Source: Pecten maximus (lineage: Eukaryota). From it: a stretch of DNA of 64,000 nucleotides. Location of the stretch: NCBI RefSeq assembly GCF_902652985.1, contig NC_047032.1, forward strand, positions 23,064,001 to 23,128,000, in the 5' to 3' direction. Shown here in pieces: positions 36,201 through 61,980 of the stretch (its first letter is position 1; each line of letters opens with the position of its first letter). A program made the position numbers and the translations under genes. The notes under the pieces were generated by a model. It saw nothing but the letters and a program-made list of their open reading frames with translations. It did not search any database and was not told the origin of the DNA.

Positions 36201-36645
36201 ATCACAGATTTAGTTTGCCAGTACTGAAATGGACATGTAGATCTATTTAACACTTTTAAGTAAACGAAGACAATTTCAATCGCATTATTTATTTTATTTC
36301 GTAGCTGATAGACTAGTTTTAGATAATTCCTTTTCGGAATTTTAATTACATACAAATTATCCTGCATAGATTTTTCATTCTATAAATTCTTTATTTCTGC
36401 CTTAGTATTTTAACACTGCTTAAAAAAAAAACAGCCATTCTATCAATAACAACCGGGTCTTGACTGGTCAAACTGGACCACTTCTCCAAACGGAACCCTC
36501 AAAATATTTGTCCCATGCATGCTTGATTTATATAAGTTCCGCTATACACGGAACATAATATCCATCGTATTGGCATTACAAATATAATGATTTAGGACTA
36601 TCATTGTACTAGTTCTTTTTTAAAGATTTAACTGAAATGACCCCC

Positions 36646-36676
<31 letters not shown>

Positions 36677-36801
36677 AACAACAAAAAACAAAAAACAAAA
36701 AAAAAAACAAAAAAAAAACACACACTGGCTGTCTTGACTGAAAAGTTTTTGTTCCAACAGTCATCTTTTTCTTTTCTTGTCACCTTCACAGTGACAGTTG
36801 A

Positions 36802-39800
36802 CTAACGCATAATTTCGCAGATATAGTACAGGTCATATCCGATACAGACACAATCATGCATATCGAAATTGTCTGACTTTGTAACACATCCACAAGTCTG
36901 TGACCCTCCATCGGGTTCTCCGCTAGCCCATGACCTGACAGACGTATCAACCCTCTCGTCATTACTGAGAAAAATCCAATCGTTCTCATTATTCCTCTTT
37001 CGTCCAGTGTATACTATGTCTGAGCTTGCTGAAAATATCAAGGTAAATACGTCACATAGCACGTTACCACATAACCAGCTATCATAAAAAAACAAATAGT
37101 GTTACATGTTTAATATGCATATAGAGAAACCCTAATGATGAAGGAAGACAATTGTATGAATCCTGCCCTGACCCGGCCTCGCACTCCATTGCCAGAATTA
37201 CCCGCAGCGTTTACCACTGTTCCACATCCACCTTTTTGTAAATCTTGTGTGCCCAAATGTCAATATCCATTCCTTTTACTTCCGGTTTATATTATAACAA
37301 TGTATCCTGTGTTCCTACCACAGTCCACATTGTGAGCACCAGTCTCCTATTTTGAAATCCATTGATTGAAGACAATGATAGATTGTGATATATCTAGGTT
37401 ATATATGTCAGATAAGAAAGAAATATCATTTGTGAAAATATTTTGACTCTAAAAGGTAATCACCAGGATATGGTTTCCTCATTGGATCGCTATGAATACC
37501 GGGAAAGGTGTCATTAACTGTCAAGGTAGGAGAGGTTTTCAAATTGTGTTTGATATAAAATTTGTCCAGTGATTTAATGTTGGTTGAAAGGTCTTAATGC
37601 ACACAAAACGTGACGAGTGGAATATGTAAAATAAGTTCTAGTAATATGTAAAATAGGCTCTAGGAATATGTAAATAGGCTCTAGGAATATGTGAAATAGG
37701 TTCTAGTAATATGTAAAATAGGTTCTAGGAATATGTTAAATAGGTTCTAGGAATATGTAAAATAGGTTCTAGGAATATGTACAATAGGTTCTAGGAATAT
37801 GTACAATAGGTTCTAGGAATATATAAAAATAGGTTCTAGGAATATGTAAAATAGGTTCTCACTATTTATTGAACAGTCATTGATAACTAGAACCTCACTT
37901 CAGGGCATACATACAGCTTCTGTACTGTGCTGCATCTGATAATTCAGCAGGCGTATGATTGCAGACTATTTTACATTCTATTGGAATACTTATGTTTTAC
38001 CTATTGAAATTGAGTGATGTATATACGAAGCCTTATTGCCATTTTTCTTTTTCCCAAATCGAAGCCCGATGTAGAGGATATGTAGTGTCTGTTCAAGTTT
38101 TGTCTTTGACATTGATTTAATGGTAATGAATTTACATAAAGAATATATATGATGGTGTTATAATATATAGATTTTTTTTTGACGCATCAACATTATTTCG
38201 AAAATACAATCTCAGTTGTATTCCATTTTTTGTGCGACGTTACCTTCGCCGATGGTACGTAGACATGTGATGTTATAGGAAGGAGTTTGCTGGATTATAA
38301 TGGTCAATATGTTACAATTTCGTCATTCGGAAGTAAATTTATTTACTACTAATGATATAAAAATAACTATAAAAGTAATAACCATATGATTTACTCACCA
38401 TACGGCAGAGTTCTCATTATAAATCGAGCTTCTTCATCCGACTTAATTTCGACAAGGTTTGCTCCCTTGGCATTACATCGAGTCTACAGTAAGAATAAGA
38501 CGATTGATTGAACAAATATTACGTATGAACATGCGAGGTATTTCTTGAATCCCCTCAACGCTTATTTCGTAAGAAAACATAGAATATGACAATAATTAAA
38601 AATTTAAATTGTGATGTCAGGATTTAAGTAGGATCTGACATTAGATGACATCCTTTCATACCACGAATGACATGATCGTTGACCTATCACTTTGTTTCGT
38701 TAGAGTAGAGATATAAATTCTACGAATGCTTTCAAAAAGGCGTTCAACATACATACATATGTACATTTCAAAGCTGTACAATAAACTTAGTTGAGTATAG
38801 GCATATAATGATGATTAAAATCAAAACAATACAATACCATATTATATAACACACATAAATACAACTCACTATTGCTGTAGCCCACTCTGTTTGCTCGGAA
38901 TCAGTAGAGACATAGTAACACTTTTCCGGAGATGTGATCCAGCCATCGTCACAGACTCGGGGAGTCACTGTAGTAGTGGTGGCGGTAGTCGTACGTGCTC
39001 TACTGGCTATAAATAGATAGTAAACACGTGTATCAAAACAACAAAATAATTATTACACTTTCTTGAAATCTCCTATAGAACAGATCAGGGTTTTGAAACA
39101 CATTAAAAGAGTGTACAAAAGATATAAATATATTATCGCATTTCAATTACGGGTTGATACGATAGAATATAATTAACAAGGTACAGTAGTGCAACATGTT
39201 TAGTCATTTAATTGTTAATGTATCACAGTGAAAGGATAATGTGTCCTTGATATACCTGTTACAGACCAATAAGATAATAGGTCATTTTAAAAGGACTGTT
39301 AAGTGAAGTTAGATGTTTTAAAAAAATTCAAGATTGTTCCTAAAAATAAATATGAGTCAATACTCCTTATGACAGTTTTTGACAAAATACTAACGTAATT
39401 TATTTTATTTGAAGTGAGCACTTGATATCAAGATCATTAGATCAGCGTTCGTTTACAACTGAAGCGGAAGCGGGATGGGAAATTCACGGATAGAAAATTA
39501 TCCTCACGAGTAAAATCAACAACGATGACCAGTGAGTGTATATGTCGCCATGCTGGCTTACCCAGATGTTTAGATGTTGTGCAATTTAGAATGTAAGTTA
39601 GAATTTTCTTTAAAACATCGGTCACATGTTTTTATATTATTATTTATGTAAATAATTTCAGTAAGAGTGGAAATCGTTTTCCCTTATCCAGACCTAGGTC
39701 ATGCATGGCGATATCATAAGCTAAACATAAAATATCAGGTGACGTATTTTGAATACCATTGTATCAAATTGAATCGTCCTGGTCCTCTGATGCGCTGGCA

Positions 39801-42800
39801 ACTGATTAGGGAAACATCGATGTACTATAAATGTTGATTACATTTTTCAAATGTGATCAGAATAAATCAAATCTAGGTAAAATTAATAAATTGTCAAAAT
39901 GTGACATTTGGTGATTTCGAACCTAAGGCTGTCAAGCGGCAGTTCGACCATATAATATGAACTAAGTAGAGTTCACGGAAAAATAATGTTTATGCCACAA
40001 TATGTAGTCAGTCGTGTTAATGTTAAATCAAAATATTTTATCAACTACGTTCTTTTTAAATGTTTCAATACCAGTTAATCGGAGGACGACTTTTTATGAA
40101 TGGGATTTGGTTGTCTTTTGATACATAGAATAAAACATCTATTGTCCTCTGATGCGCTCTTTGTTAAAAAATATAACAATTTTGAAACCCTCCTTGAAAG
40201 TTGTAAAAGACCGATTATGCAACTTTTATATATCTATTGAAATTAACAGATACATTTCATTTTGCAAATAAGATTAAGATTAGATTTAAGGTTGGAATGC
40301 AAAGACTCAGTTTTTGACATTTTTTTTAAATTAAAAAAACCAAGTCACCTTTTGGACGAAACATGCTAATATGATAACACTTGACTGAACTGTCCTTTTA
40401 AAATCAGTTTACTAGATTGCTATGAATGCTGTAATTTTCTTCAAGATTTTTTTTTTCAAGTTGGCTACATCTTTTTCTCGGTCATTGTACAATTTCCTAA
40501 AACATTATTTGTTTAGAGAGAACAAGATATTTAAGTGTAATATACTTTTACGTCGGCTGTACATGATCGAACTATTTGTTGTACGCGTTTCGCAGACATA
40601 TCTTTTGCAATTAAGGCATCATTTTGACTAACGCAAAGTTTCGCAGATGTAGAAGAGGTCATATCCTGTACAGAAACAGTCCCACATTAGGAAGTTATCG
40701 TCCTCTTTGGTACACCCGCACTCCTGAGTCCCTCCATCTGGCTCTCCGTCACCCCATGACCTCACAGATATATCGACTCTCTCGTCATTACTAAGAAAAA
40801 CCCATGCGCCTTCATCATTCCTCTTACGTCCTGTATATACGTAGTCAGTGGTTGCTGAAAGTAATAAATCAAGCACGTTTGTCCTTTATAGATAATAAGC
40901 ATGTGTTAATATCATGCTGTAAAATGAGGTGTTGTTACTTAAATCGAAACTAAATTGATGCTGAATATTGGTGTATGGAAATCTGATACGGGCGATGTCA
41001 ACCTAAGGATTTGTTTTAGATGTTTAATTACATACTGTATAATGGAATGTGTTTATTTTATTTTACTTCTTGATAACAATATGTAGGAAGAAAGACATCT
41101 GTTTAACAGCGGCATTATAATTCATTCGATTTAAAAAAAATCTCCATTGTATTTGCTCTTTTCCTATATGAATCCTGTTGGTTTGCTTTTATGAAACAAT
41201 CGAGTTTGTTACGAGTACATGTAATATAACTGACTGTCTGTTATTAAATTATAAGCGCTTTATCATAATTTACATACAAACACGTGCCGGCAAATTTCGC
41301 ATCATGAACCAGGCTTCCCCATTCGTGCGGAACTCTACCAGATCGGCTCCCATGGCAGTACAACGGTCCTGCGATAAGTAAATATCCTCAATTGGACTTC
41401 AAATATATTTAAGCCTGTAAAGGCATTTTCAAAACAGCTGATGTAGCTTATGCTCATTGGAGAGGATTACGGAAGGTTGGTGATTAAAAAAAACAGTATT
41501 GCCATACCCACAGGCCCGAAAGAATGCCCCTCTGTTAATCGGACAAAATATCCTCTTTTCATTTCATTCTTATAAACGTTGATGCTGTATTGTCTTTAAA
41601 AACAGGATATGCATTGACCACTTTGATTGTATGGTATACCCTCTTTTAATACATGTAGCCAAGACCACAACACCGGCAATTTATCTCGATTTTTATGGCT
41701 AAAACCTTTGAATTGAAAGACTACCGGTAAATATATTGACCTCGCCCAAACTTTCCGATATTGACCACACGAGATGCCTATGATCGCAAATATGCAATCC
41801 TATACAAAGGATATTCATGTATTGTATTTTTCATACTTAAATGCTCAATTATTTGTATCGGAACTTTTGTCTCGATGGCCAAGAGGTGAAGCACCTAAAC
41901 ATTCATTAAACTCCCCGGGGTTCAATTTCCATCGACTTCGTTATCATAATTTTTTTATAGTAGCTAGACGTTCCAATCGACTTACTTTAAAAAAAATATT
42001 TTGTATATGTATTTATATAATATCATCTGCTCGTTGGGAGCATTACCACAGCCTACCACTCAGCTCTAACGTCAAGTGGTGTCGTCTTTTTCGTTTTTGT
42101 AAATTTCTCCTTTCTACTTAGACATATTCCTGCCTCCACGTTTTAACCGGTTATTTAATGTCTAATGCCTGGTTAGGAATATCACAATTTCCGTATGTAA
42201 GATAGACAACTGACAGAACTCACTTACTACCCTTGGTCCTTATTGAAGCACAATGCTGAAGAAAGGTTTCTAATATCTGGAACAATGTTCGCCCTAGAAC
42301 GTTAACCAACAAAGAAGCCATAATCAAATTGATTTTAAAATACGAAAACACGTTTAAATATTCAGAATTATGTTGTTTTAGATAAAAAAAAAAAAACATC
42401 CTTCAATAGGGAAAATCAATAAAACTCACAATGGCTGTAGCCCACTCCGTTTTCTCCTGAGAGGTAGAAACATAGTAACACTTTCCCCCTGGTGACATGA
42501 TCCAGCCATCGTCACAGACAAGTTCTGGTGTGTTTGTGGTTGTACTGGCTAGAAAGAGAATGATATTCGATTGCTTTAATGCAAACAAAATAAATTAAGC
42601 TACATCAATTAGGGAGATACAAATTAAGAAGCTTATTTGTAAGATTTATGTTTAAAAAAATATCATAAAGTCCTGTTGTTTCTTCATTCAATCTGGTTGT
42701 TATTCGCTTTTTTATTATTATTAATATTCCGTCATCGCAATGCGGTAATTTAAGGACATTTCACGGAACTGTCTTGTTTCAATGGGAATAAACCCTGCTG

Positions 42801-44863
42801 GCACTTTATACTGACTCGGGAATGGGAAGAAAAGTATTGCTTAATACGAGAGGGAAATCTAACAATTAGTCATGAGAGCAGGTACCATTCATGCACCTTA
42901 TCTGAACGTTCATCTTCGAGACCTTAAATGCAAATGATCGTTCACGTATTGTTGAACCTGTTTTGGTGAAAATGGGTTTTGGTATCAGAAAGTACTTCCA
43001 AACACTACCTGAATTGCAGAGCGAAAAAATATATATAGGGATGTTAAAGATAAATTATAGCGAATGTGACCTGCTCTTTGTATGTGATGATATATCTACA
43101 ACAATCGATACAATCCCTTTTATACAGACCACTGTCACTCGGTCCGTTTTATGAACATTTGAACACATACAAAATATTGTTAACAATTCAGGATAGACAA
43201 GATAAAACAGTTCTTGACGAAAAAACAAACAAACAAAACAGAAAGACATCGACATAACAACAACATCGCATGTGGGTCAATGTTGCGCCACATTCTTTTG
43301 CTCATACCTGTATCCATGTAAACTATACATTGTGGAATATAGTTTTAATTTTTACATTTCAATGACGTCACATTGTTTTCAGGTGTCACGTTGTGTTTGC
43401 ACTGCCTGACACGAAGGCCTCATTTAGTATTTTTGTAGGTTTTTATTTTTGAATTGGTGAGATAGAGTAAAGCAATATCAAGCAAAGTATCAAACATGTA
43501 TGAATGTAATTTTACAAAAAACGACAGGTTACACATAAGACTACTTTCTCTAAGATATGCTGTCATGGTTATTATGGAGACTGTGTTTTTACCACGATAT
43601 AGATTTTACCAACTTGTAAAACTTGTATAACTGAAAACTGTAAATAATTTGCATTTGTGTTGATATGTTTCTATGCCGCCTTTCAATACTAAAAACACTG
43701 TAGAGTTCCAGTATCGGAACATAAACATTTACATTGGTAGCTATTTTTTTCCAAAAGTGCAACGTTGTATCAAACGAAAACAAAATATCAAAAAATGATT
43801 AAAAAAACACCTAATTTTCCGAGAAATAAAGACAAGAAAATATTGGTGTTTTGTTTAAGGTGACTAACAACAGCAATAACAAATAACAACAACACATAGA
43901 ATAACATAAAATAAACTCCGAATGACCAAGGAACACGATTTATATGTTAGATCGTACTGATACCTCACATCTGCAAAATATTAAAAACAACATATGTTTG
44001 GGATGTGGACGTTCATGTCTCTGGTATTTTGACGTGTTCTATATTTTATGGACAGTAAAAGTTTAACATGGGAATAAGGCAGATTACAAGAGCACCGATG
44101 TTTCTATGTATTAGATAAGAGGATGAAGAGATGGTTGTTGCGAACTTTAATGCGACGGTTCATTTGAACCCTTCATAATGACTGCATTTGTTCAAAAATT
44201 GCTAATAATTGCATAGGTTTAAATATATACATTTATTTCATTTTCGTGCTAAATATGGTCTCATCAAAGCATTATATTGATATATTTTTTTTTCACAATT
44301 CATTTGTCATTTTCTTGATAAAGTTGACAAAATGTAGTTATGAATATTCACACATTAAAATCTTATGCTGCTTTTGAAACACAAAAGTGCATTCTCCTTA
44401 ACATGAAGTCAAAATTCATCTGATTACATAGGTACCTCATATTCAACCTACTCAAAATCTGTGTAAGGGCATTGTCTTGTAACTTACCGTGGCTGTCTGC
44501 TCCTCTCAACAGCTCCCGTAACTCTGTCTGCTCTTTTGTTAAAATTCGAATTTCATTTTCAAACCCAGACAAGATTTTCGAGAAGACTCCAAGTTCGTTG
44601 GACATCGATCGTTTGAATTCAATAATTTCAGTTTCGTTACAATGACACTGATAGTCGGAATCTATCATTCTTTCAACAGCATCGACCCTCCTTTGTAGCT
44701 GACATACTTTATCGTTTAAATTGAAATAAGTTCCGTTTAAAAGATCAACAACTTCACTTGTTAAACTTTTCTCCTCGTATTTCTCCAATAAGCCATTGTC
44801 TGAATATACTTTATCGCACTTTGAAATTAAAAGCAAAACAGCGAAAAGTACACACGTCTTCAT
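36802..44863 (-). CDS. Secreted C-type lectin 'gene C': signal peptide, coiled coil and two CTLD modules (418 aa if both are spliced in tandem)
   Basis: Exon 1 44863-44488; module C1 42548-42430, 41368-41278, 40854-40633 (stop at 40628 if unspliced); module C2 39006-38870, 38483-38399, 37028-36802. All introns GT-AG with compatible phases (1,0,1,1,0,1). CTLD motifs CDDGW..KCYY, W..A..RC..GA.LVE, W..GEPD, YICE. Confidence 0.85.
37620..37860. repeat. 22-bp intronic minisatellite (~11 copies)
   Basis: aggaatatgtaaaataggttct repeated. Confidence 0.9.
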
Positions 44864-46216
44864 CTTTCTATCGGCCTTGTGGAAATGTACATATGGAATA
44901 AAGTAAGTAAGATTACATCAGATGGTTTTAATAAAAATTCTGGTCATGTGATATCTCAGAAACGAAATGAAACATCAAAATGAAATAATTTACTATACAA
45001 AAACAAGACAGCTTTACTTCTTTATAATGGTGAAAACTATACATTTCAAGTGTTTATTTCGACCATTAGAGATAATTTTACATGTAGTTGTTAGGTTTCA
45101 CGGGGTTAATATTACGCGGGTGGGCCAGTCTGACCTTGTTCACGGGTATTACGTTTCGTGCAATCATGCCTAATCAACATTATACAGTAAACACTGCTTT
45201 ACATTTGTTTGCATATATAAATATTTTAATGGGTATTGATTTTTGCACTTTTTTCAATAACCGCGAATATAGTGGAATTACAGTATCATAAACGTCGTAC
45301 AGTGTGTGCGTTGTTGGCGGTTCAGCATATTCAATCAATCTCATTTCTACAATCTTCCTCCATCTCGATCTGTCCCCGTTTGTAAACATTTCACATTTCA
45401 AACTTCTCATGTTCAATCAATGAGATTGGATCAACTCAAACGTGCTTACCATGACCCTGAGATGGTTTTGACCAAGTTTTGTTACACCTATCTACGTGCT
45501 GATGTATGTGGGAAAGGGCATGTGAAGCTTTGTTTTATGTCAGATATGATTTTTGCCTCTGTGAGTGAAAAATTGCTCTGATATTACCGCTATATAAAAT
45601 TCCACGTCTCGCATATGAATGTTAAGAATTAGGTACAAGTTAAAGTGGGAATTGTTTTCCCGATTTATCTATAACAGATAAAAAGAAAAATTTTCTCTAT
45701 TACATGTTTCAACCTAATTCGATTATCAAAATACTTTTTTTTATTTTAAAATGACATTTGAGTAGTTTTTACAAATTACATCAAGTTGCATGGTCACGTA
45801 CAAAACATTGCAAAACTGTTGGTTGATTATTTATTTGTACAGGATATTGGGCCACTCTGTTTCAGACGTCACAAACATTCGATATCACTATCATCACATT
45901 TATATTATATATTTATTATTGAAGCTTACTGAAATCAGCCGATGTTAGACAAATGACGAAGGCGAAATTACGATAGGTTTTTGTAGGCACGTGATCATTA
46001 ACAATTGCAATGTTCCGATTAAACTGGCGAAAGAAAAGCTTTCATCCTAATCTAGGTCTACTGATATGTCTGGTCCCATCGCTATGAATTTATTTTTATT
46101 TACCTAAATAATGGCTTAATGAATACAAATCGAACTCTTTATATAAAAAAATATCTGATCAGTTATACATTTGAAATTGACCTGGATAAAGCCTTTTTTA
46201 AATGATCGGCATAATG

Positions 46217-46218
<2 letters not shown>

Positions 46219-46268
<50 letters not shown>
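46219..46268. repeat. (CT)n microsatellite
   Basis: About 24 CT units at the left edge of the duplicated block. Confidence 0.95.
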
Positions 46269-46271
<3 letters not shown>

Positions 46272-47307
46272 ATATATGTAATCGATATCACACGAGACGT
46301 TGTACTGAGAAACAGAAAATCAACTATTTAAATTTCATGCTTCTGCCTCTGTTTTTTCATCATTGGAAGATTTGCCTGGGTTGGCAGATTGCATGATTTT
46401 AAGTTACTAAGTTTTATGCACTGAAAATATCATACAAAATATCATACAAGGTACTATGTCAGAATGCTGGAGAGGTAGACTGCCAGAAATGCTACCGGAA
46501 GAGATATCTTATAACTACCAATTTACTTGATGTTAAAATCTTCGTCTGAATCCTACAGCATAACACGGATGTGTTTGGATCACGTGATTTAATGATGACC
46601 TCACGATTCTCACTCGCAATGCAAATCGATATAGACATAGAAAATATCTACCTCCTGGAATATAATGGATATACATGTACATATAGCACAATATGATTGG
46701 GACTGTGACATCATGTCCTAAGGAATTATACCAACAAGCATGTCAAATTTTACAACTTCCGTTCGGTTCGTATAAAAGACAATGGCAAAGATGAAGACGC
46801 CAAGGTCTTTGATGGATCTAAAGAGAATAAATGCTGCAGTTTCAGACATAGGTTATGAATAATTCGTTATTTGCGCATAGAAAAAGGATTAGGTTGTAAT
46901 ATTTATGTTTGGATGTTCCACACTAATCACATTGATAACTGGATTTTCTCAATATTACACATATTCCCAAATAGTTCGCATACAATTCTAGAAATGTTGA
47001 AAATGAGCAGCATTGAAATGGCAATTTTGCAGTCCACTAATTGTAATCGTGATAGCCTGTACGCAGATTTTGCTATTTAAACAATCTATAGGAGAAACAG
47101 AATCAGTCTTTATGCTTTCTACTTTCGGTTTCTATTTGACATATAACAGAACATCGAAATTCTCGTTCAAATGTTTATTCCTTTTAACAGTGGTTTATTA
47201 ACCATACATTTTATAGTATTTTTATGGCGTCATTGTTTTTTTTCCAGAATATGACTAACGCCCTATCTCACAGATATAGTACAGACTATACCCGGTACAG
47301 AATATGA

Positions 47308-50300
47308 CTAACGCCCTATCTCACAGATATAGTACAGACTATACCCGGTACAGAAGCAGTCGTGCATCAGAAAGTCATCCGTTTTTTGAGTACATCCACA
47401 TTCCTGGCTACTTCCACCATTCGGTTCCCCTCTAGCCCACGATCTCACCCAGGTATCAACTTTCTCGTCGTTGCTGACAAAAACCCAAATGTTTGCGTCG
47501 TTCCTCTGTCGACCGGTATACACAAGATCTCCTAAAGATTTTGAACATTAGCAAATTATCATCATTGTCAAATCTGAGTCATGTGCATAGAAAACAATTT
47601 GAGCGGGATTCTCGCAAAGATGAACCAAACGATTTAAAAAAAAAGATTTATTGATTTGATTTAAACATATTTTATTTGTTCAATCTAATAAATAGGACTA
47701 GGCACAAATTATCGCAACTGTTGAAACACCTTCTCTCAAGAAATTTATTCTGATGCCCAATCGATAAAAGGGGAATACCAACAAGCAAAAGAAATCAGAA
47801 TTTTTAACTCATGACGAAGCTACGACTCTAAATCACACAGGGAAACAGAGTGTTCCAAATCATGATACCGACCCCAAAACGTTTGGTCTACATCAACCTG
47901 TTTCTATCAAGCCCCTGTATTGTAAGTAAAGAGGTCCAACAGTCGTGTCCTAGCGCTCTATTGATACATTCACACAAGCTTCTGAAATAATTGATAACAT
48001 TTAATGCAGCTTTATACATCAAAAGACAACATAGTTGGCCGAGTCGATTGAAATGAAGAATTATTGTTTTAAAGTAGGTCACAAGTCACGGTTTAGGTCA
48101 GCAGTCCTGCATTTGTATTGCCAGTGGAAACCCCTTTTCGCAAGGAACACAAATGTAAAATCCTATCTCATACAGTTAGCATACTTTAGCGAAGGTTAAA
48201 GTTTGTTTAAACTATGCAAAATGGCAAAAGGACTTTGTTCCGGCGAGGTAACGGTAAGATATTTCTATCAACACAACAAAAGCATGAATTACTCGCCTAC
48301 ACGGCTCGGCAGATTTTCCATTATGAATTGGGATTCTTCATCCGTTTTGATCTCAACCAGAATTGCTCCCTTCGACTTGCACCGGCTCTGAAACAAGGAT
48401 GAGCAAATATGTTTGAAATTGAAATAAAACCTGTACAATCATTTTTATTTTTTTTTATTAAGTTCTCTTATGATAATTGGATATTATTTTATAATTAATA
48501 TTATTACATTTTCCAGTAATAGTGTTTATTAAATCTTAGCTGCTAAATAATTAGAACGATGCTTCCTATTTACAGTTCTCGGAGAGAAATAATGCCACTG
48601 CATAACATATATATTGCCAGCCTACTTGTTTTGTTATTTTTAGTATTTCGGATAATATAACCCGTTATGTATTCAGGCGCAGTACCGGATTTATGAAAAA
48701 ATAAATCAATAATATAAAAGTACCAGGTAAATATCAGTCGGGACTATTTGCAGTAGTACTAGTGTGTTTGATTGCGTTAGAGCTAGGAAATCCGTTGATA
48801 ATTTAGAAACAGTGATATTTTACATGCGATAATACTGGTAATACTAAGCCTTTCACAATCATAAATTTTCTACTTACGGAAATGATAATAACATTTGTCT
48901 TTCCATCAACGACAAATACATTAATAATTAACAAGAGTTCACTATGTAAAACGAGTTTCTTATGACTATTAATTGAAATTAACTTTAAATCCAATTAATA
49001 CGACTCACAATAGCTGTAGCCCATTCCGTTTTCTCCGAAAAACTGGACACATAGTAGCACTTGTCCGGGGATGTGATCCAGCCATCGTCACAGTTTCTTG
49101 GTTCAGTGGTAGGTTCGGGGGTGGTCATAGTAATAGTACTGGCTTTAATTAGAAAAGTCATGTTTCATAGTACACGACAATCCATTAAATCATAACTACT
49201 TACAGATGCTAAAAACCATTAAGTAATGCATTATCTTATTTCATTGAGTATTAATACATATGTTAAACGAGCATTTCAGTGTTTACAGAGGTTCTGAAGT
49301 ATACATTGAAGCATGCGGCACAACGCTTTTGAATCTTTATTTGAAAGAAAATGAATCTTCTAAAACCAAAGTGTCATCGTTGACATTTATGTATCATCTA
49401 TATCATTACTTAACCTTTATCTGTTACTAATTCATTTATTTTCAGAGGTCTAGGTATTTAACTTTTTTGACAGAAATAGAGAAAATGATCATTTCTTTCA
49501 TAAAAAGTCACACGTAGATTTATATTATTAACATTTTAACGATAACAGATCACTAACGCAAATTCTCGCAGATATAGAAGAGATAAAATCCAGTACACAG
49601 GCAATCCAACATTAGGAAGTCGTTTGACTTTCGGGTACAACCGCACGTCTGCTTTCCCCCATCTGGCTCTCCGGTACTCCATGACCTCTCGGACGTATCG
49701 ACTCTCTCGTCGCTACTGAGAAAAACCCATCGGCCAGCGTCATCGCTCTTACGTCCAGTATAGACTATGTGACTTGTCGCTGAAAATAACAAATCACATA
49801 CGTGAGTATCGTGAGAACAAAAGTAAAATATGTGTGGTTTCACAGCGATGAAACTAAATGCTGTTCTTTGAATTGGAAGTACAATGTACGATCATTGAAC
49901 ATTGATGCAGAATGAATTATATTCGAGTAGAACATGATAATTATTATCAACATGTATTTCTTAATCTTTTTCAGAATGACATTATTTGCGAACTGCTAAA
50001 TTTCCGAAGCACCGCAAAAGGTTTCACAAAGTTAAACCCGCGTTTAAATGTAGTGTTGAGTTGTTATTAAATTACTGCTACTGCTCAATTCTTGAATTAA
50101 TGGCATAATGGATATCCTGGGCATAAAGACACTCTGATAAATTTCATGATTACTTATGCACACACCTTTTTTTATTTCAAAAATGGTAAAGTGAGACATT
50201 CCACCTTCTACTACATGACAGTTTATCATTTCGAGAAATTTTAGTTGTAAGTGCCTTGAATGACGACTTTTTTCACTTACATGCTCGTTTCTATTTTTGA

Positions 50301-52130
50301 TAACAAAGTATGGTTTACATACAAACACGTTCTGGTAGATTGCCCATCACAAATTGTGCTTCCTCATCTGTTTTAAACTCCACTAGCTTTGCCCCCATGT
50401 CTCTACATCGATTCTGCGGAAAGGAACAAAGTGTTTTCAGCTACGCGTACCTGGTAGTTCCTTTGCCACTACTCTGGTTGTCATTAATATATTTGATAGA
50501 TAATTCCGATAGATTTATCATTGATATCGAGAGATGATCAATACCAAGCAACTTACAATGGCTGTAGCCCATTCCGTTTTCTCTGAAGTAGTGGAGACAT
50601 AGTAGCATTTTTTCCCAGGTGACAGAAGCCAGCCATCTTCACAGACCAGTTCTGAGGTGGGGGTAAACATTGTAACAATAAAGATGTTAAGGTTTAAAGC
50701 ATGTAAATAAATTAAAACCAAAAAAAGAACAATAAATGGAATATGTACTTAGCGGAACGAAAGAGAAGAAAACATTATGTTTGGTTTCCAACAAATCTGG
50801 ACATGTAAAATGAATACTAATATATAGTACTGGTACAGCTACAAACATTCCATTGTTTAAAAATGTAGAATATCTGCAGGTTAACAAATGTTGTCGCCGT
50901 ATGGATGGACGTACGGACGACTTCGACTATTGGGATGTAGCATTATTTTCCTTGGGACTTGTCGGGTGCAAATCACAGTTTTGATTTTAAAAGAATATCT
51001 CGCTAAAAACGCACATGCGCAGTAAGGTTTAACGATGAATTACGAGTAAAACAAAATTTGCAGCTATTTTCTCCTTTAGGCGACGAAGATATTTTGTCGG
51101 AATTAATCAATTACTCATCCCACAACTACATGTACCTCTGATAGAATACTGGTGGACAACGCCATACCATCATACTTCTTTTATTTTATTTATATCTTTT
51201 GATTTATGCAAAACATGTGTATATATTACAAATATATGTCCTCTCACAAGAGGGCTTGCACACGTCTTTCATATTTTTAACCACATAATTGTTTGGACCA
51301 GTAAATATATAAATGAAATAATAATAGATAAATAATTCAACAACTATTTCAATAAAAAAGTGATACAAATAAATAATAGTGATAATCAAATGAAGAAAAT
51401 ATATGCGTTAATATGTTGGCGGAATTAATGGTTAATCCCAATTCCAAAAAAGTGCTTTGTCTAAATAAGTTTTTCCCTGTTGATATCATGTGTCTGCGTC
51501 AAGCTAGCTGGGTGTCTCAGATTTTGGGAATGCTGTGAACCTAATATGGTATATGTAAGTATTGCTATTTCTTTATATATATACAATTATTTGCAATAAT
51601 ATGATTTATACATGTGTTTTTAGAATATGTGAATTAAGCATTTCCTAGGTATGTGCAACATGTTTCCAACATTATCATGCTCCCTGACACCAGATACCAT
51701 GATACTTAGTCAATATTCATTACATCGTTTATATGCAATATTATCTTACCGTAGCTATCCCCTCCGTCTAGTATCAAACGTAAACCTTCCTGGTCATTTT
51801 CCAAAATGCGAAGATCATTTTCAAAGCCAGACAGGATTTTTGAGATGTCTTTAAGTTCATTGGATATTGATCGTTTGAACTCTAGAATCGCTTCTTTGTT
51901 ACATTCACACTGATTGGCGACATCTGTCATTCCTTCAATAACATCGACTCTCTTTTGTAACTGACATACTGTCTCGTTTAGATTGAAATAAGTTCCGTTC
52001 AAAAGACCAACACCTTCACTTGTTAAACCTTCCCCGTCGTATTTCTTCAATAAAATCCTTGTTGTCTGAAAATACTTCTGCATACTTGTGATAGAAAAAC
52101 CAAAAACGCGAAGTATACACACGTCTTCAT
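47308..52130 (-). pseudogene. C-type lectin 'gene B': frameshifted leader exon plus two open CTLD modules
   Basis: Exon 1 52130-51750 is 381 nt versus 379 in gene A (two 1-nt insertions, early TGA). Module B1 50651-50557, 50413-50323, 49779-49558/49553 (EPD). Module B2 49142-49009, 48387-48297 (GC donor), 47531-47308 (EPN). Confidence 0.7.
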
Positions 52131-53531
52131 CTTTCTTAAGCCCTCGTTGATATGTGCGCGTGAAAGGAAGTAGAATTTAATTTCCATACGGCTACAATCT
52201 AAATTCCCTGGTCATGTAATATCTCAAAAACCGAAAACTTTGATATTATATTTCTTCGAGATAAATAGCTATACAAAAACTTGGCAGTTTTACTGCTTCA
52301 TGGTATAGATATACTGTACGTCATGTGGTAATTTTGACATGGAGACAGTTTTACATCTAATATTTATACAGCGCTCGGAAAAAAACATTCAAATATAATA
52401 ATATTTCAAAACCTTTATTTCTCTGTTTGTTATTATCCAAGTTGAACTTAACAGTGCGGAAATTATCTTATGGCCAGATATTAATAAAACAAATTAATAA
52501 ACAAATAAAAAATATGAAAATTTAAAAAAATTTAAAATGCCAACAAAAAAATCCCGAAATTCCAGGCTGGGACCTGCTATTCAAAACTGGAAAATGAAAT
52601 ATAACAAGAACAGAATATATATCTTACTTCAATATTCACATATGTTTATATATTGTATAGCTTAAAACATATATGTCGATATCTTTTATAGATTCAAACA
52701 TATGTATATATCTGTTAGTTTAAACATACAGTATGTATATAACTGTAAAGATCTTATGAAATAGTTTCTTGCAAACTGCGTTTTTCTGGTGGCACAAGGG
52801 TTTTTAAAGCCCTCAATGTAAATACTGGTTTTTTTCTTATTTTGTGTGGACCTCCTTCATGATTAAAGGGACAAATTCATTACTTAATTGATTATCAAAC
52901 AAATCAACAGTTGGTGCACAAGATGGTTCATGACCCCCAACCCTTCCAGGGTCTAAAAGAGCCCAATGCCAATCACACAACATATAGGTAATCGATATCA
53001 CACGAGACGTTGTACTGAGAAACTGACAGCCTCAAAAATCAACTATTTAAGTTCAATGCTTCTGCCTCTGTGTTTCATCATTTGAAGTTTTGCCTGGGTT
53101 GGCAGATTACACCATTTGAAATTAGTTAGTTAGTTGTATGCACTGAAAACTTCATACAAGGTACTATGTCAGAATGCTGGAGAGGTAGACTGCCAGAAAT
53201 GCTACCGGAAGAGATATCTTATAACTACCAATTTTCTTGATGTTAAAATCTTGGTCTGAATCCTACAGCATAACACGGATGTGTTTGGATCACGTGATTT
53301 AATGATGACCTCACGATTCTCACTCGCAATGCAAATCGATATAGACATAGAAAATATCTACCTCCTGGAATATAATGGATATACATGTATATAGCACAAT
53401 ATGATTGGGAACTGTGACATCATGTCCTACAGAATTAAACTAGCAAGCATGTTACAATTTACAAATTCCGTTTGGTTGGTATAACAGACAATGGTAAAGA
53501 TGATGACACCGAGGTCTTTGATGGATTTTAA

Positions 53532-55032
53532 GAGTGGATGTCAGCAAGCATCGAGCATTAGGTGGAAACTGAAAAAAATAGATTTTAGAAAAAGTGACCT
53601 TAAATGTTAAATTATGTTATAATTGGTGGATTTGAATAACAAAAATGGAATTTCAATCATGTCTGTGGCTCCGTATCCAAGCAATATGACTTCCTTAGTT
53701 ACGGGCTCATATAACACATCGCCTACATCGAATTTTTAGAATTTAGAGTATCTCTGAATCCTAAATAACAGTGAGATTAAAGTATTTACAGCCAAAATTT
53801 AATAATGATGACCCCCCTTAATAATTTGATTTAAAAAAATATAATTGGCAAGATTTACAAACTGTTGCTATGGTAACCTGAATACAGCAAGGAATTCTAA
53901 CTGAAAAAATATCAAAATATGACAAAGTTTGGTTGATCTTAGTTGGAATCTACAACCATATATTGAGTATTTATATGGTTTTCTTTTCGTTAGATGTATA
54001 CAGGGTAAGTTTAAAAAATGAAATTGGCTGGCAACTTAGAGAGGCTTTTGGTATAATGATTCAAATTTTTCCATTTTTTTCATGATTTCTGACATTTTCC
54101 GCACATTTTTTCTCACAAAACAATGTATATATATATATATAAATTGAACTTTTTAACCACATTTTAATTCATCTCCTTAAAAAGAAATAATAAATGGACA
54201 TTTCCAATGATACAATTATTATGAAATTAAAAAAATAATGGTTTATTTGCATTTTGGTTGCCATAGCAACCACTTATTAAATTAGGAAAAAAGCACTTAC
54301 AGTTCTTTTTTGTAATAATTTTGAATCAAAGAAATGAACTCTTCTTTCACTGATTCAATGTTGAACACTTCAACAATTTTTACTTTGACACATTTTGATA
54401 TGGTCACTAAAAATATTGAAGTTGCAGATATTAACAAAACATAGTAATACTTAGCATAGAAGAAAATGAAAGTACACAAAGCTGAAATTAAAAGTGTCAT
54501 TATGGGAGTTGCTGTAGATTTTTTTTTTTTGTTCCTAATGACTGTAACTTAACTGAATTGAGATTTAAGGTTGATTTCTTCTACAGACTTTATAATGTTG
54601 ACAAATTAGGCCTACTGGGGTATTAAAGACACAGGTCACCTTTGTGACAATTGTATAAGAGTTATCCCCCTTTTTGAACAACTTCTCAGTGGATTTCTGG
54701 CCATGCATACTCTGTTTCTCCACCCTTTTCCCAGAAACAGTATAAGTATTGACAAAGTATACCTATATAGTATGGTTTTCAACTTCAAAATATCTTGTCC
54801 TTGCCTTTATGAGGTAATGAGGTATACCACACTTTATTTTTAGGTCACCTGAGACAAAGTCTCTAGTGACCTACATGTATTCTAATCGCCTTTTGCCCGT
54901 CCTTGTCCGTCTTCCATCAGTAAACAAGCTACATTTTCCACTTCTCCAAAACTGACAAACCAAATTCAATGTAATTTGGCAGGAAGCTTTCATGATCAAA
55001 GGTTAACCAAAATTGTGAATTATATATGGTCA

Positions 55033-55072
<40 letters not shown>

Positions 55073-57466
55073 ATCACCACCATCAGGGGCCTGAGAAACA
55101 TAATCGAAAAGAGTCAAATCAACTAAACTTACAAAAAAAAAAAATTCTCAAGACAGAAATAGGGTAGAATCAAAGACTCTTCATAGGTGAAAGTGTCTGA
55201 GGTACTTAACCAAAATTATGAATTTCATGACCCTTGAGTCTCACCTTTACCCCTGAGGAGAGGTAATATTTACTATAGTTTATATAGGAAAATCACATGT
55301 TTTACTATCATTTGTTTGATTTCAATTGAAATTCATTCTAACTTGGTAATGGTTAACATTATCAGCTTTGGATGACAGCTTGATGGTATGTACACGTTTG
55401 GCCTGACTGACCCCCTTGGTTGATGGGTGGAGTCCAAAAGGGTTGAATAAACTAAAATATTGCAAAACTCTGGTGACCATTAAGGACCAAGGACCTTGTA
55501 TATGAAAAAAAAGCAATGTGAATGGATTTCAGGCATGAAAGTTTTTATTGAAATGGCTGCATCCATGGTTGTGAAGTATTGGTTTTTGTTTAGAGATGGA
55601 AAAGACATTCATTATCCTGTAATTAGAGCAAAACCCAATATTACATGAATCATAAAGTGATTTTATCTCAGATATACCTCAAATGTGTCAAAAACTAAAG
55701 TATTGTTTAGTAATCTTTGGTCACTGGACAGAAATTCACATTAATTTGGCATTTAACCTTTAAGTCAAGGTCAACATTATCATTCGGTGATAAACGTACT
55801 AGTATATAGAAGCTTAAAAAATAGCAATCAGTGATTGTTAATTTGAATTCCTGTAGAAGTACTTTTGGTTGAATTTTGAACATTCCAAATTTATAAGTTT
55901 ATATAACAGTATAAAACAGAAAAGCATTCCTGCTGAGTACCCAGACAATAATTCTAGACTCTACCTCCTGAGTCCATATTTATGTATGATAGTATCCATT
56001 TACAGGTGAAATACCTCTGCAAATTGTATGTCTATCATGCTACATGTACACCTCTGGGTGTAAATACATTAAAAAATAAGCAATTAAAATATCTGTACAC
56101 ATCCCTTGCTCTGAGAGTGAATTTGGTTCCTGCAGTCTGTAAAACCCTCTTGGTTGTGAAAATTAATAGTTTGGGTAAATATGTTTATTACTTTGCAGTC
56201 AAATTCAACCATATTCAATATTTGTTCCATGTACCTCTTCTTAGACACCAATGATCAGAAGATGTCAGCCATTTCTGGCACATTTTGTTTATAATAACTC
56301 TTCGATTGCAGATAATCCTACTATTCAAATGAACATACATTGTATGTCAAAACAATTTTAATTCTGTTACTGGGATGAATATGTTAGATTTTGAAATAGC
56401 TATCCGAAAAAATACGCGCAGGTTGTTTTGGCCTTAATTTGTGATTTTTTTTTTTTTTTTTTAGGTTTTTTTATGTGGTTACCATTGTTTTCACAGGTCT
56501 GAAAAACAGAAGAATAAGTTTATTATTTTTTAATAACTGTATTATAATTGAAAATATTGTACAGATTACAATTATGTATACTTTTGTATAGTTAATATTA
56601 CAGGAATAACCGGTTGTTACATATATTTAAAAAACATGTGCCTAAATTTGTTTTAGAATTAGGAACTTTTACTGATTAATGCTGAGTAGCAATTTCCTCA
56701 CAATTTCACTGTATTTCTAGTATGCCATCGAAGGGAAATTCCATACAAACATTATTTTAACCGATTCCCATGTCTAAAAAGAAGTTCATGCCTTTTCAAT
56801 TACCATAATTGTCTAGAATGCTGTGAACTTTGGTATCCATCTTTCCATGTAAACAATGAACTTTTTGTACATTTCACAAAAGAGTTCCAACAGGGGTGAT
56901 AACTCGTCCCTCTCAATAGCTTAGATTTAATGGTAGTAATACTAAATCCTCTTTTTTTACAATCTACAACCTCGATGAAGCTAATGATTATACATGATAT
57001 TTTCTGTACTTAATGTTGCATTATAATCAAAAGAAAAATTGGCTGGCAAATGATTAAGAAAAAAAATAGCAATACTTTTATAACCTGATATCCCTATCTA
57101 AATAGGTAGTATATGGGACAATTTATATTATACGGGCTAAAAGTCTTGATAGATGTTATACTTTTCAGTCTAAAATTATTATATGATATGCACTAAGTAA
57201 CTATAAACTTAAAAAGTAAAAAAATGTAACACCAGAAATTTATAATAAATTAATTTCTTTAAATATTGTAATATCCCACTGAGTCTGATTGGGTGTTTTT
57301 AAAGACTTGTCGGTTTCCATGGCAACGGTGATCACTTTGATACTTGCTACCTATTTCCTTGCATGATATTACATTTTGACCAACTTATGTAAATTTGAAG
57401 CATTTTGGTAATTTTGACACTTTCCATATTTTGCCAAAATTGCTCGATGCTTGCTGACATCCACTC
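53532..57466. mobile_element. TTAA-specific DNA transposon (Sola3-like; Kolobok not excluded), no intact ORF
   Basis: 26-bp perfect TIR gagtggatgtcagcaagcatcgagca / tgctcgatgcttgctgacatccactc; TTAA TSD at 53528-53531 and 57467-57470; GAG...CTC termini; empty site at ~46811-46833 in the paralogous block. Confidence 0.9.
54836..55500. mobile_element. Nested Helentron-associated/MITE-like repeat
   Basis: Starts ttttttaggtcacctgag...gtgacct (short inverted repeat), then a ccgtc microsatellite and caaaattgtgaatt...tgaccc subrepeats; right end not defined. Confidence 0.5.
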
Positions 57467-57896
57467 TTAAGAGAATAAATGTTGTAGTTTGAGATTTAGG
57501 TTATGAATAATTTGTTATTTGCGTATAGAAAAAAGGATGAGGTTGTAATATTTATGTTTGGATGTTCCACACTAATCACATTGATAACTGGATTTTCTCA
57601 ATATAACAAATATTCCCAAATAGTTCGCATACAATTCTAGAAATGTTGAAAATGAGCAGCATTGAAATGGCAATTTTGCAGTCCACTAATTGTAATCGTG
57701 ATAGCCTGTACGCAGATTTTCCTATTTAAACAATCTATAGGAGAAACAGAATCAGTCTTTCTGCTTTCTACTTTCGGTTTCTATTTGACATATAACAGAA
57801 CATCGAAATTCTCGTTCAAATGTTTATAACAGTGGTTTATTAACCATACATTTTATAGTATTTTTATGGCGTCATTGTTTTTTTTCCAGAATATGA

Positions 57897-60800
57897 CTAA
57901 CGCCCTATCTCACAGATATAGTACAGACTATACCCGGTACAGAAGCAGTCGTGCATCAGAAAGTCATCCGATTTTTGAGTACATCCACATTCCTGGCTAC
58001 TTCCACCATTCGGTTCCCCTCTAGCCCACGATCTCACCGAGGTATCAACTTTCTCGTCGTTGCTGACAAAAACCCAAATGTTTGCGTCGTTCCTCTGTCG
58101 ACCGGTATACACAAGATCTGTGCCTCCTAGAGAGTTTGAACATAAGCAAATTATTATCATTGTCAAATCTAAGTCAAGTGCATACAAAACAATTTGAGCG
58201 GAGTTTTCGCAAAGATAAACCAAACTTTTTTTTTTTAATTTGTTTTATTGATTCGATTTAAACATATTTTATTCTAATCTAATAAATAGGACTAGGCACA
58301 AATTATTGCAACTCACGAAACGCCTTCTTCCAAGAAATTTATTCTGATGCCCTTAAGATTCACTTTACCTCATTTTATCAATTGATAAAAGGAGAATACC
58401 AACAAACAAAAGAAACCAGAATTCTAACTCATGACGAAGCTACGCCTCTAAATCACACAGGGAAACAGATTGTCCCAAATAATGATGCCGACCACATAAA
58501 TTGTGTATAGTCTGCATCAACCTGCTTCTATCAAAACCCTGTATTGTAAGTAAAGACTAAAGAGGTCAAACAGTCGTGTCCTAGTGCTTTATTGATATAT
58601 TCACACAGGGCTTTGAAATAATTGATAAAAGAATAAAAAAAATACACATAAAAAGACACTATAGTTGTCCGAGTCGGTAGAAATTAAGAATTACTTTCTT
58701 CTTAAAGTAGGTCGCAAGTCACGGTTAAGGTCAGCAGTTCCGCATTTGTATTACCAATGGAAATTACTTTTCGCAAGGAACACACATGTCAAATATGCGA
58801 ATCCTATCTCATACAGTTAGCATACTTTACCGAAGGTTAAAGTTTGTTTAAACTATGCAAAAGGGCATATTCAAGGTCAACAGGTCTGCAAATGAAGTAC
58901 AAACATAAAAGGTGTATGTCAGACACCTAGGATGTATCCTCATTAGTATTGACATAACACTGTTTTATAAAACCTTTTACATTGCTGTCTATGGACGCCG
59001 ACGATGCCGACGCTTAACGATATAGAAAAGGCTCCCCTGGACTTTGTCATGGCGAGGTAACAGTACAATATTTCTATTTAAACAACAAAAACATAAATTA
59101 CTCACCTACACGGCTCGGCAGATTTTCCATTATGAATTGGGATTCTTCATCCGTTTTGATCTCAACCAGAATTGATCCCTTCGACTTGCACCGGCTCTGA
59201 AACAAGGATGAGCAAATACGTTTGAAATTGACATAAAACCTGTACAACCATGTCTTTTACTAAGGTCGCTTATGATAATTCGTAAGGAATGTATATCATA
59301 TGTATAGACCAGGTAACTTTTGCAGTTTATTGTATTGTGTAATTCGAAGAAAATAATGCTACACATTGTCATTTTTCTCTACTTCATCTTCCATTTTATT
59401 GAATACAAAATTAAACCGGTATTTAGCAACAGTTATAAGACATCTCTACATCCTAAATCTGAAGAAAAACAGGATTATATTGACGGAAATAATGGTTCTT
59501 TGTCAAGTTTATCTCGAGTATCAATAAAATAGTTTTTATGCATCTTTTTATAATTAATATTATTACATTTTCCAGTAATAGTGGTTACATAATCTTAGTT
59601 GCTGATTAATAAGAACGGGACTTCATATTTACTGTTCTCGGAGCGAATTAATGACACTGCATAACATATATATTGTCAGTCTACTTGTTTTGTTATTTTT
59701 AGAATTTAGGATAATATAACCCGTTATGTATTCAGGCGCAGTACCGGGATTTATGAAAACATAAATTAATAATATAAAAGTACAAGGTAAATATCAGTCG
59801 GGACTATTTGAAGTAGCACAAGTGCGTTTAAATACATGTACGTTAGAGCTTAGAATTCCGTTAATCATTTAGAAACTGACATTTTACACGAGATAATACT
59901 GGTAATACTAGTCCTTTTATAATCACACATTTTCTACTAATGGAAATGATAATAACATTTGTTTTCCACCAAAGACAAAGACACTAACAATTTACCATAT
60001 TTCATAATGTAAAACGATTTTTTGCTTGTCATAAATGAAATTGACTTTTTATCCGATCTTGATGAAAATAACAATTCTATTCCTAATGAAATATCATTAA
60101 TTATTCCATGACAAGAAAATATTGTCATACTTTAATTTTGCCTCAAAGCATTATCAAAACATTAATACGACTTACAATAGCTGTAGCCCATTCCGTTATC
60201 TCGAAATAAGTTGAGACATAGTAGCACTTTTCCGGGGATGTGATCCAGCCATCGTCACAGTTTCTTGGTTGAGTGGTAGGTTCGGGGGTGGTCATAGTAG
60301 TAGTACTTGCTTTAAATAGAAATGTCATGTTTCATAGTACACGACAACCCATTAAATCATAACTAGTTAGATATGCTAAAAAACATTAAGTAATACATTA
60401 TCTTATTTCGTGAAGTATTGATAAATAAGTAAAACGAACATTTCTATGTAAATTGATGTTGATATCAGGTGAAAGTATTCGGTGATTGGGCAGTGTTGTA
60501 CCAATCAATATACCACACTCTATCATCATCTAGTACTCATTTATTTACTTCGGGTGCAAAGTCTTGGTATTTAACCTTTTTCTATCTATTTTATCTTTGC
60601 ATTCACAGTTTACAATTTACAAGGGTGCAATGCCTGTATATGGAGAGGGAAGTCTTGGTATTTTAAATTTCTTTTTACCATTGTCATATTTTCTGTTCAT
60701 CGGCTCTTAATAAAGATATTATAATGGAACTAGCATTTACCGATCTTAGGTAGGTGATTAGACGTAGCTGTTAAAAGAATGAATTTATTACCGGAATGTT

Positions 60801-61980
60801 CTCCTAAACAAGACAAAAGTTTACCTTAAAAATGACACCACGGATGTTATTTTGAAACACCTGTATTATTTTGCTGAAATAAATGGGTACCTGTAAACTG
60901 CGAAACGAAAGCAAACGAAACGAAAAATGAAAACAAAAATAGACTGTACATAGGCCTTAGTGTCCCATTCTCATCGGTGTAAAAACAAGACAGAGGAAAG
61001 AATGAATTTATCACAATATCCACTCAGTATGAAATAACTCTATTTAGATAATATGCTTAGTCCATGATTTATAGGCATGTAAATTGCGTAGTGTATTGGT
61101 GCACGCTCGATCTAAAATAACGTGACAGAGGTGATTGTTAGCAACTTCGTTTATGGTGGGAAAACTAGGTGTATATCTGAAAAGTGAGAGTTTCGAGAAA
61201 ATTGCTGTACTTGAAAGGCACGATTCGTATAAAAAAAAAACGCCGGCTTAACGCGCTTTTCCCGTATTGCTGGTTTTGGGAGTGTAGACAGGATGGAAGC
61301 ATCAGATGACAATTCCATTTTAGTAACTTTGATGAAATGTGAATAATTCATTGCTCAATGATTAAATAGCAACTTGGTTTTCCATAGTTTTGCGTTTTGC
61401 ATATCCTGTTTTTATGGAATCCGTGATATAATTTGTTGACCGACCTACGCACATGTGTTTTGAGTTTTTATCTTCTGAAAAATATTGATCAAATTCGAAA
61501 TATCAAGGGAACATGTACTTTTCTAATTATTCGTCAATATCCATTACATCGTTCATATGCAATACTATCTTCCCCTCAATATAATGAAAACATGACCTTA
61601 CCGTCGATGTCCCCTCCGTCTAGTGTCAAACGTAAATCTTCCTGCTCATTTTCCAAAATGCGAAGATCATTTTCAAAGCCAGACAGGATTTTTGAGATAC
61701 CTTTAAGTTCATTGGATATTGATCGTTTGAACTCTAGAACCGCTTCTTTGTAACATTCACACTGATTGTCGACATCTGTCATTCCTTCGATAGCATCGAC
61801 TCTCTTTTGTAACTGACATACTGTCTCGTTTAGATTGAAATAAGTTCCGTTCAAAAGACTAACGCCTTCACTTGTTAAACTTTCGCCCTCGTATTTCTGC
61901 GATAAAACCTTGTTGTCTGAAAATACTTCTACATACTTTGATATAGAAACCAAAAAACCGAAATATATGCACGTCTTCAT
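57897..61980 (-). CDS. Secreted C-type lectin 'gene A': signal peptide, coiled coil, Thr/Pro linker and one EPN-type CTLD (277 aa)
   Basis: Exons 61980-61602, 60309-60176, 59196-59106, 58126-57897; GT-AG introns, phases 1,0,1; 834 nt open; WARGEPNGG, ECGC, MHDCFC, YICE. Confidence 0.87.

Follow-up and report, generated by a model that had tools for sequence, protein, structure and literature searches.

A heptamer read as a stop codon or as a predicted splice donor at the module ends of tandem C-type lectin genes in Pecten maximus

Is a stop codon that lies inside a splice donor a selected switch between a short and a long lectin, or a by-product of descent? The question is raised by a window of 64,000 nucleotides of the scallop Pecten maximus (contig NC_047032.1, C18 in the coordinates below, positions 23,064,001 to 23,128,000), the whole stretch of DNA that was analysed, in which the C-type lectin-like domain (CTLD) modules of three minus-strand genes (A, B and C) end in the same heptamer, CGTTAGT. 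Left unspliced, the heptamer reads as Arg and an in-frame TAG stop; cut after its first base, it reads as a phase-1 donor, GTTAGT. An earlier note had proposed a possible stop-or-extend switch, in which splicing competes with intronic polyadenylation. The heptamer is probably a module end passed on by descent whose job depends on its position, terminal or internal, and the TAG in the internal donors of this cluster is probably a tolerated passenger.

Nine copies of the heptamer were counted in the window, none of them on the plus strand. This count was mildly above that of dinucleotide-preserving shuffles (mean 5.1; 7 of 100 shuffles reached nine), and chance as the origin of the pattern was rejected on homologous placement: six of the nine copies lie at the homologous end of the last exon of a CTLD module (36801, 40627, 47307, 47254, 49552 and 57896). 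All five module ends listed in the earlier note carried the heptamer, and the copy at 47254 was additional to them, being the product of a perfect 53-bp tandem duplication (47245-47355). The remaining copies (26672, 39389 and 61858) are unrelated to CTLD module ends. The six module-end heptamers are paralogous copies and hence not independent events. The codons before the heptamer do diverge, the five frames ending EIMR, ETLR, EIGR, ENLR and EIGR, each with Arg and stop read from the heptamer itself. Among the four independent lineages in the window (C1 and C2, the two modules of gene C; B1, the first module of gene B; and the single module of gene A), none of the 14 four-fold degenerate columns of the last exon was invariant, and the heptamer was.

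The phases and coordinates proposed for the donor hold. The exons ending at C 40633 and C 49558 close in phase 1, and the next modules open after AG in phase 1, at 39006 and 49142 respectively, either joining giving CCC (Pro). With the acceptor as one end and the C of the closing CGT as the other, module length was 432 nt for C1, 408 nt for B1 and 444 nt for C2, all divisible by three; the CTLD modules are phase 1-1 symmetric cassettes whose acceptors follow AG and supply two codon bases. The RefSeq model of gene C (P0014) reads FYICETL-P-SRARTTT with 100% identity to the window exons, which is the junction 40633^39006. Both isoforms (P0015 and P0016) of LOC117316155, a close paralogue of gene B, use the homologous junction, two-CTLD models from other P. 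maximus clusters (P0007 and P0011) likewise join at the heptamer site, and seven two-CTLD proteins of Argopecten irradians (418-431 aa) have the same layout. A real intron at the heptamer position of the two-CTLD genes of the family is supported by these models, by paralogues and Argopecten genes that have GTAAGT or GTACGT and no stop there, and by the unchanged GT, +5G and +6T of 10 internal sites; use of 40633^39006 in vivo is inferred from the RefSeq model and the comparison between genes. The donor is suboptimal, as the earlier note had it: GTTAGT matched 5 of 9 consensus positions, none of them on the exon side and with T at +3, against 6-7 of 9 in GTAAGT paralogues.

Splicing at other donors near these exon ends is suggested by the annotation of two relatives. 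Isoform X2 of LOC117316155 (P0016; C18:23161865-23161984, outside the window) departs from its last CTLD exon before the usual end, using a GTGAG that lies within the conserved V-R-S-W codons, and continues in an exon some 1.9 kb past the normal stop; according to this model, the family does have alternative 3' splicing, at a donor other than the heptamer. The internal site of the A. irradians gene of P0010 (L054:31588-31830) is CTTAAGT, with GT lost, and the annotated protein has five further residues ahead of the linker (ETL-LKSATM), a sign that the donor may have shifted.

Five P. maximus clusters were fetched and their exons mapped, giving about six one-module genes and about nine with two modules, the latter in four clusters that lie on three chromosomes. 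Module ends with the heptamer recurred across the genome in paralogues, and also in Mizuhopecten. A maximum-likelihood tree was made of 28 modules, with joined module sequences built from the fetched genomic exons; in it, the first modules formed one clade (support 99/97) and a small second group (L024/L027) was separate from it. By this tree the two-module layout predates the split of Pecten and Argopecten, because the first-module clade includes an A. irradians module.

Internal sites, those at the end of the first of two modules, read CGTTAGT in four, GGTTAGT in one and CGTAAGT in four cases in P. maximus (n = 9), with the stop present in 5 of 9. Those of A. irradians (n = 6) read CGTAAGT in three cases and GGTAAGT, CGTACGT and CTTAAGT in one each, with TAG in 0 of 6. 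By parsimony on the nine P. maximus sites and one from A. irradians (n = 10), GT, +5G and +6T underwent no change and +4A was kept with one exception, and the four-fold columns of the same exon changed 2.0 times on average (no change in 1 of 16 columns). The +3 base, which makes the TAG, changed twice, which is the neutral rate. Free variation of the stop among relatives, an outcome that the earlier note had itself named as contrary to a switch, was thus what the internal sites presented.

Terminal sites of P. maximus (n = 16) kept the stop in all cases (TAG 15, TAA 1), and in other scallops the terminal stop was TAG, TGA, or lost with a three-residue extension. The Arg codon before it was CGT in 11, CGC in 3, CGA in 1 and CGG in 1 of the 16, and the base after it T in 12 and G in 4. 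With two A. irradians sites and one of Mizuhopecten yessoensis included (n = 18), the third base of the Arg codon changed three times and the post-stop base twice, close to the four-fold mean of 3.8, and extra selection on these two bases was rejected. A major-allele frequency of about 0.69 (11/16), with a four-fold mean of 0.61, agrees with no extra selection. The pattern indicates constraint on the donor, and not on the stop, in internal copies, and the reverse in terminal copies. Within the window, the heptamer is invariant because two of the four lineages are internal, and donor-constrained, and two are terminal and retain the majority state. The claim that conservation of synonymous bases favours donor selection stands inside the window and mostly dissolves across the family. 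Beyond the stop itself, the first 25-30 nt (roughly TAGTCATATNCTG.CGTGAAAATCACA) are recognisably conserved in some P. maximus paralogues and a Mizuhopecten gene (e.g. L010, L018 and L052), more than expected of a 3' untranslated region (UTR) at about 66% protein identity. The sequence of locus L052 includes 1,262 N.

The heptamer would accordingly have been inherited by descent, with its role set by the position of the module. In the last or only module it would serve as Arg plus the TAG stop, a polyadenylation hexamer usually following after about 60-140 nt. Where a gene has two modules, the GT(T/A)AGT of the first would be a phase-1 5' splice site, joined to the next acceptor to give a two-CTLD lectin, and the internal TAG would be a passenger, tolerated as intronic rather than selected as a switch. 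Some unspliced RNA would be expected from so weak a donor as GTTAGT, and its frame would end cleanly after module 1.

Polyadenylation signals, scored as the first AATAAA or ATTAAA downstream of the heptamer, were numerically closer to terminal than to internal sites (median 115 vs 289 nt; Mann-Whitney p = 0.07). The first hexamer lay 412 nt downstream of the terminal heptamer of gene C, where a region of long T-rich and then G-only runs (36640-36720) starts about 80 nt past the final stop. After the internal TAG of gene C, neither hexamer was present for 1,224 nt from the start of the heptamer, in an intron of 70% A+T, and because of this gap polyadenylation just behind that TAG is disfavoured. 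These distances bear on the switch of the earlier note, read here as one in which the weak GTTAGT competes with 3'-end formation or intron retention and yields a regulated ratio of one- to two-CTLD lectin. Gene B offers it an AATAAA 118 nt downstream of the B1 heptamer, and gene B, one of only two examples in the window, is frameshifted; two of the five sites first listed (49552 and 47307) belong to it. The weak donor, with its T at +3, is what a switch would need, and TAG is kept at all four internal sites of the cluster and in L024; across internal sites the stop-making base nonetheless keeps to the neutral rate of change, and 6 of 6 in A. irradians lack it, and on the terminal side GT and the trailing T drift. 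GTTAGT at the internal sites of the cluster may be derived, because A. irradians and the other Pecten clusters have mostly GTAAGT, or may have been copied from the neighbouring terminal module; if derived, a single step weakened the donor and created the stop together. Were the TAG absent, no more than about 11 residues (RKSYV...) would be appended by read-through, and a stop at this place would thus bring little advantage. Selection of the TAG as a switch was thus not supported, and a switch of this kind is judged unlikely.

A bolder proposal, rather unlikely as well, starts from the same change. In the Pecten cluster, the single change of GTAAGT to GTTAGT would weaken the donor and set an in-frame TAG at the exon edge, unspliced RNA would encode a clean one-CTLD lectin, and valency would be tunable by splicing efficiency. 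In its wider form, terminal modules would keep a latent phase-1 donor over the stop, so that tandem duplication or read-through into the next gene would at once give an in-frame multi-CTLD protein.

Four RNA runs from four studies were mapped as Logan contigs on 36621-42620, the repeat at 36621-36734 being skipped; contig depth was 2-5, and the contigs show neither absence, RNA ends nor levels. Record 9 of run X3 and record 11 of run X6 joined the three exons of module 2 of gene C (37028^38399 and 38483^38870). Record 10 of X3 joined exons 2 and 3 of module 1 (41278^40854), with a loose end matching the last part of exon 1. Transcription and removal of the internal introns thus hold for both modules of gene C. 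Contigs of X2, X3 and X6 passed the terminal heptamer at 36801 into the 3' UTR, down to 36735-36755. Run X1 was rejected as RNA evidence, since it had only intronic pieces and no exons and looks like DNA, and record 8 of X2 was rejected as gene C, being the highly expressed paralogue P0007. The last intron of module 2 contains 11 copies of a 22-bp unit (37619-37859), and contigs of X2 (37512-37679, 37827-37977 and 38145-38294) place that intron, or a similar repeat, in an RNA-like run.

Several of the contig results, and some features of the sites, weigh against the heptamer as an inherited end with a passenger TAG. No contig in the four runs carried the junction 40633^39006 at this low depth, which does not show absence, and the donor at 40633 was uncovered, so that the mapping gave the junction no support. 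Record 9 of X3 and record 11 of X6, from two studies, ran unspliced through the acceptor at 39006, for 104 and 67 nt (to 39110 and 39073). RNA cover of the inter-module intron was 39007-39110 and 39435-39642, the latter also from X6, in which nothing of module 1 was found. The RefSeq junctions may be computational, and the low match of GTTAGT to the donor consensus also counts here. Retention of GT was 9 of 9 at internal and 11 of 16 at terminal sites, which is not significant alone (Fisher p = 0.12). The retention of TAG throughout the internal sites of the window's own cluster belongs here too, and a lineage-specific function of TAG in that cluster is possible. What the analysis does establish is how the genes are built, their phases, how constraint is distributed over the family and how old the two-module layout is.

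The unspliced contigs admit more than one reading. A 1.6-kb intron with a weak donor, removed slowly or inefficiently, would account for them, and an internal transcription start site for module-2 RNA is possible. They cannot be productive module-2 mRNA, because module 2 lacks a start codon or signal peptide of its own. For the switch they supply intron retention observed in two studies, and the presence of module 2 in one transcript with its unspliced upstream intron is contrary to what intronic polyadenylation predicts.

Without a 40633^39006 contig, the first exon (E1) might instead be spliced from its donor (44488, phase 1) either to module 1, ending at its own TAG, or to the module-2 acceptor at 39006, giving two alternative one-CTLD lectins that differ in their sugar-binding loops, with the internal heptamer a true stop. 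The E1 donor and both module acceptors are all phase 1, gene A consists of exactly E1 plus a CTLD of module-2 type, so such a join works in nature, and a pair of AATAAA at 39409, just downstream of the contig at 39435-39642, could mark the long 3' UTR of a module-1 mRNA. The paralogue and the A. irradians first modules that lack a stop at the site would nevertheless need splicing, GT, +5G and +6T are invariant at internal sites, and all annotated models in the two species are two-CTLD. No contig carried 44488^39006, though E1 lies outside the mapped stretch 36621-42620. This choice between modules is quite improbable.

It is very improbable that the second modules of the window are never usefully joined, whether with start sites of their own or by read-through into non-coding or decaying RNA, with the RefSeq junction a modelling artefact. 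Contigs do run through the acceptor at 39006, X6 has module 2 and nearby intron and not module 1, and frameshifts occur in gene B and in L022, a paralogue of gene C (C18:23147xxx). Module 2 of gene C nonetheless has an intact frame, three good splice-site pairs, the EPD motif and its full set of cysteines, although it diverges from every relative at about 30% of nucleotides; neither an ATG nor a signal peptide belonging to it was found in the frames or by direct reading, and Pecten and Argopecten share the two-module layout. A module end inherited by descent, spliced when internal and read as a stop when terminal, is the account preferred for these genes.

The window is part of a tandem cluster of secreted, immune-type lectin genes of P. 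maximus. Its three genes, delimited from stop-to-stop frames, direct reading and exon-query tblastn (Table 1), share one layout: E1, with a signal peptide (MKTC...) and a heptad-rich coiled-coil neck, ends in phase 1 and is followed by one three-exon CTLD module in gene A and two in genes B and C, each module opening with a Thr-rich linker after a phase-1 acceptor. Pfam Lectin_C (PF00059; gathering cut-off 22.6 bits) matched P0014 with 56.7 bits in two stretches and P0019 with 30 bits; single last exons alone gave no match to it, whole proteins being needed. The cysteine framework CxxGW...CYY...C...GEP(D/N)GG...CGC...DC.C...ICE was present in all modules. The sugar-binding loop was GEPNGG (EPN) in gene A (57897-58126) and module 2 of gene B (47308-47531), and GEPDGG (EPD) in both modules of gene C (36802-37028 and 40633-40854) and module 1 of gene B (49558-49779). 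The EPN loop is of the mannose type by the textbook rule. To judge from these loops, a two-module lectin could combine differing sugar specificities. The NCBI models P0014, P0019 and P0016 begin at an internal Met (MIDSDY..., MTDVDN...), hence without a signal peptide; in the genome, an in-frame upstream ATG at 44863 in gene C and at 61980 in gene A opens MKTC... and a hydrophobic leader. Either the models are truncated at the 5' end or transcription starts inside E1.

Table 1. Coordinates of the three lectin genes of the window and of their module-end sites (positions of the window).
Feature	Position	Strand	Remark
Gene C (LOC117316692)	36802-44863	minus	every border AG/GT; P0014 maps at 100%
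Gene C E1, signal peptide and coiled-coil neck	44863-44488	minus	
Gene C module 1 exons	42548-42430, 41368-41278, 40854-40633	minus	
Gene C module 1 end, internal site	40627-40633	minus	C 40633 last exon base; GT 40632-40631 predicted donor; TAG 40630-40628 in frame if unspliced
Gene C inter-module intron	39007-40632	minus	first AATAAA 39409-39404
Gene C module 2 exons	39006-38870, 38483-38399, 37028-36802	minus	
Gene C module 2 end, terminal site	36801-36807	minus	Arg CGT, then stop TAG 36804-36802; P0014 terminates ...CEIMR
Gene B, probably a pseudogene	47308-52130	minus	E1 52130-51750
Gene B module 1 exons	50651-50557, 50413-50323, 49779-49558	minus	
Gene B module 1 end, internal site	49552-49558	minus	homologous junction ENL-P-TAST used by close paralogue LOC117316155 (P0015/P0016)
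Gene B module 2 exons	49142-49009, 48387-48297 (donor GC, not GT), 47531-47308	minus	
Gene B module 2 end, terminal site	47245-47355	minus	heptamer twice (47307-47313, 47254-47260) within perfect 53-bp tandem duplication
Gene A, one CTLD (NCBI 'perlucin-like', P0019)	57897-61980	minus	E1 61980-61602
Gene A CTLD exons	60309-60176, 59196-59106, 58126-57897	minus	
Gene A single CTLD end, terminal site	57896-57902	minus	AATAAA 61 nt downstream; P0019 terminates ...CEIGR

Gene B is probably dead, a decaying copy or pseudogene, because its E1 is frameshifted, one donor is GC, the 53-bp duplication lies at its 3' end and the database protein matches included no model of it. Two 1-bp insertions in E1, near 52088 and 52056 and relative to genes A and C, cut the ATG frame short after 27 codons. 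The donor of the middle exon of its module 2 (48295-48296) is GC where gene A has GT; a GC-AG intron suspected in gene A was rejected, the GC being confined to module 2 of gene B.

Repeats occupy other parts of the window. A 5.4-kb array of a 20-bp unit (11074-16510; about 269 copies, 77% matches) is G+C-richer and strongly C-skewed on the plus strand, and the composition bump at 12-16 kb is due to it. Minisatellite arrays lie at 63218-63994, 7-944, 5703-6646, 7139-8440, 20907-22173 and 25207-26591, with periods of 26, 72, 42, 34, 31 and 47 bp. The 26-bp array lies directly upstream of gene A and has one frame open for three units (78 bp), for which chance in the repeat is the likeliest cause.

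The secreted and membrane forms of IgM are the classical switch between splicing and intronic polyadenylation, with composite terminal exons. As in a switch of that type, a shorter protein could result in the window genes if the 5' splice site that closes a coding exon were left unused; unlike it, gene C has no polyadenylation hexamer for 1.2 kb, and the polyadenylation site and the two isoforms are hypothetical. Classical cases add intron-encoded residues, whereas here the stop is inside the donor. Switches between splicing and intronic polyadenylation are well documented, with an atlas for immune cells (PMC5928244).

Scallop C-type lectins with several carbohydrate-recognition domains are known, such as CfLec-3 of Chlamys farreri, with three (PMC4432315), within an expanded bivalve C-type lectin repertoire (PMC10140915). 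The window genes resemble them in being secreted, with tandem CTLDs, Lectin_C matches above threshold, tandem clusters and EPN/EPD loops, and differ in the N-terminal coiled-coil neck exon and the Thr-rich linkers. No cloned cDNA relative was found among the database matches, which were genome-annotation models only.

Domain duplication by phase 1-1 symmetric cassettes is established in exon shuffling (discussed in PMC13172734). The CTLD modules share with such cassettes the phase-1 borders and a length divisible by three, by which a tandem copy stays in frame; unlike in the usual cassette, the 3' border of a single-module gene is no ordinary intron and is a stop codon region that reads as a GT donor. 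The literature searched yielded no account, for lectins or for domain duplication, of a stop codon that overlaps a donor. Nor was it found in the searched papers that one homologous heptamer provides both the stop region of a terminal module and the donor of an internal one, at the border of a phase 1-1 cassette.

If the TAG were a switch after all, it would set lectin valency post-transcriptionally in a very economical way; no present result requires one. If instead the heptamer is an inherited module end with a passenger TAG, the cluster would be a clear natural example of domain addition to a protein, in which one- and two-CTLD genes differ only in downstream content because the cassette is phase 1-1. 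For annotation of this lectin family, an Arg-TAG-T followed by an orphan module would then mean that the exon is to be spliced on. The same arrangement would help to explain the ready diversification of valency in bivalve lectin repertoires.

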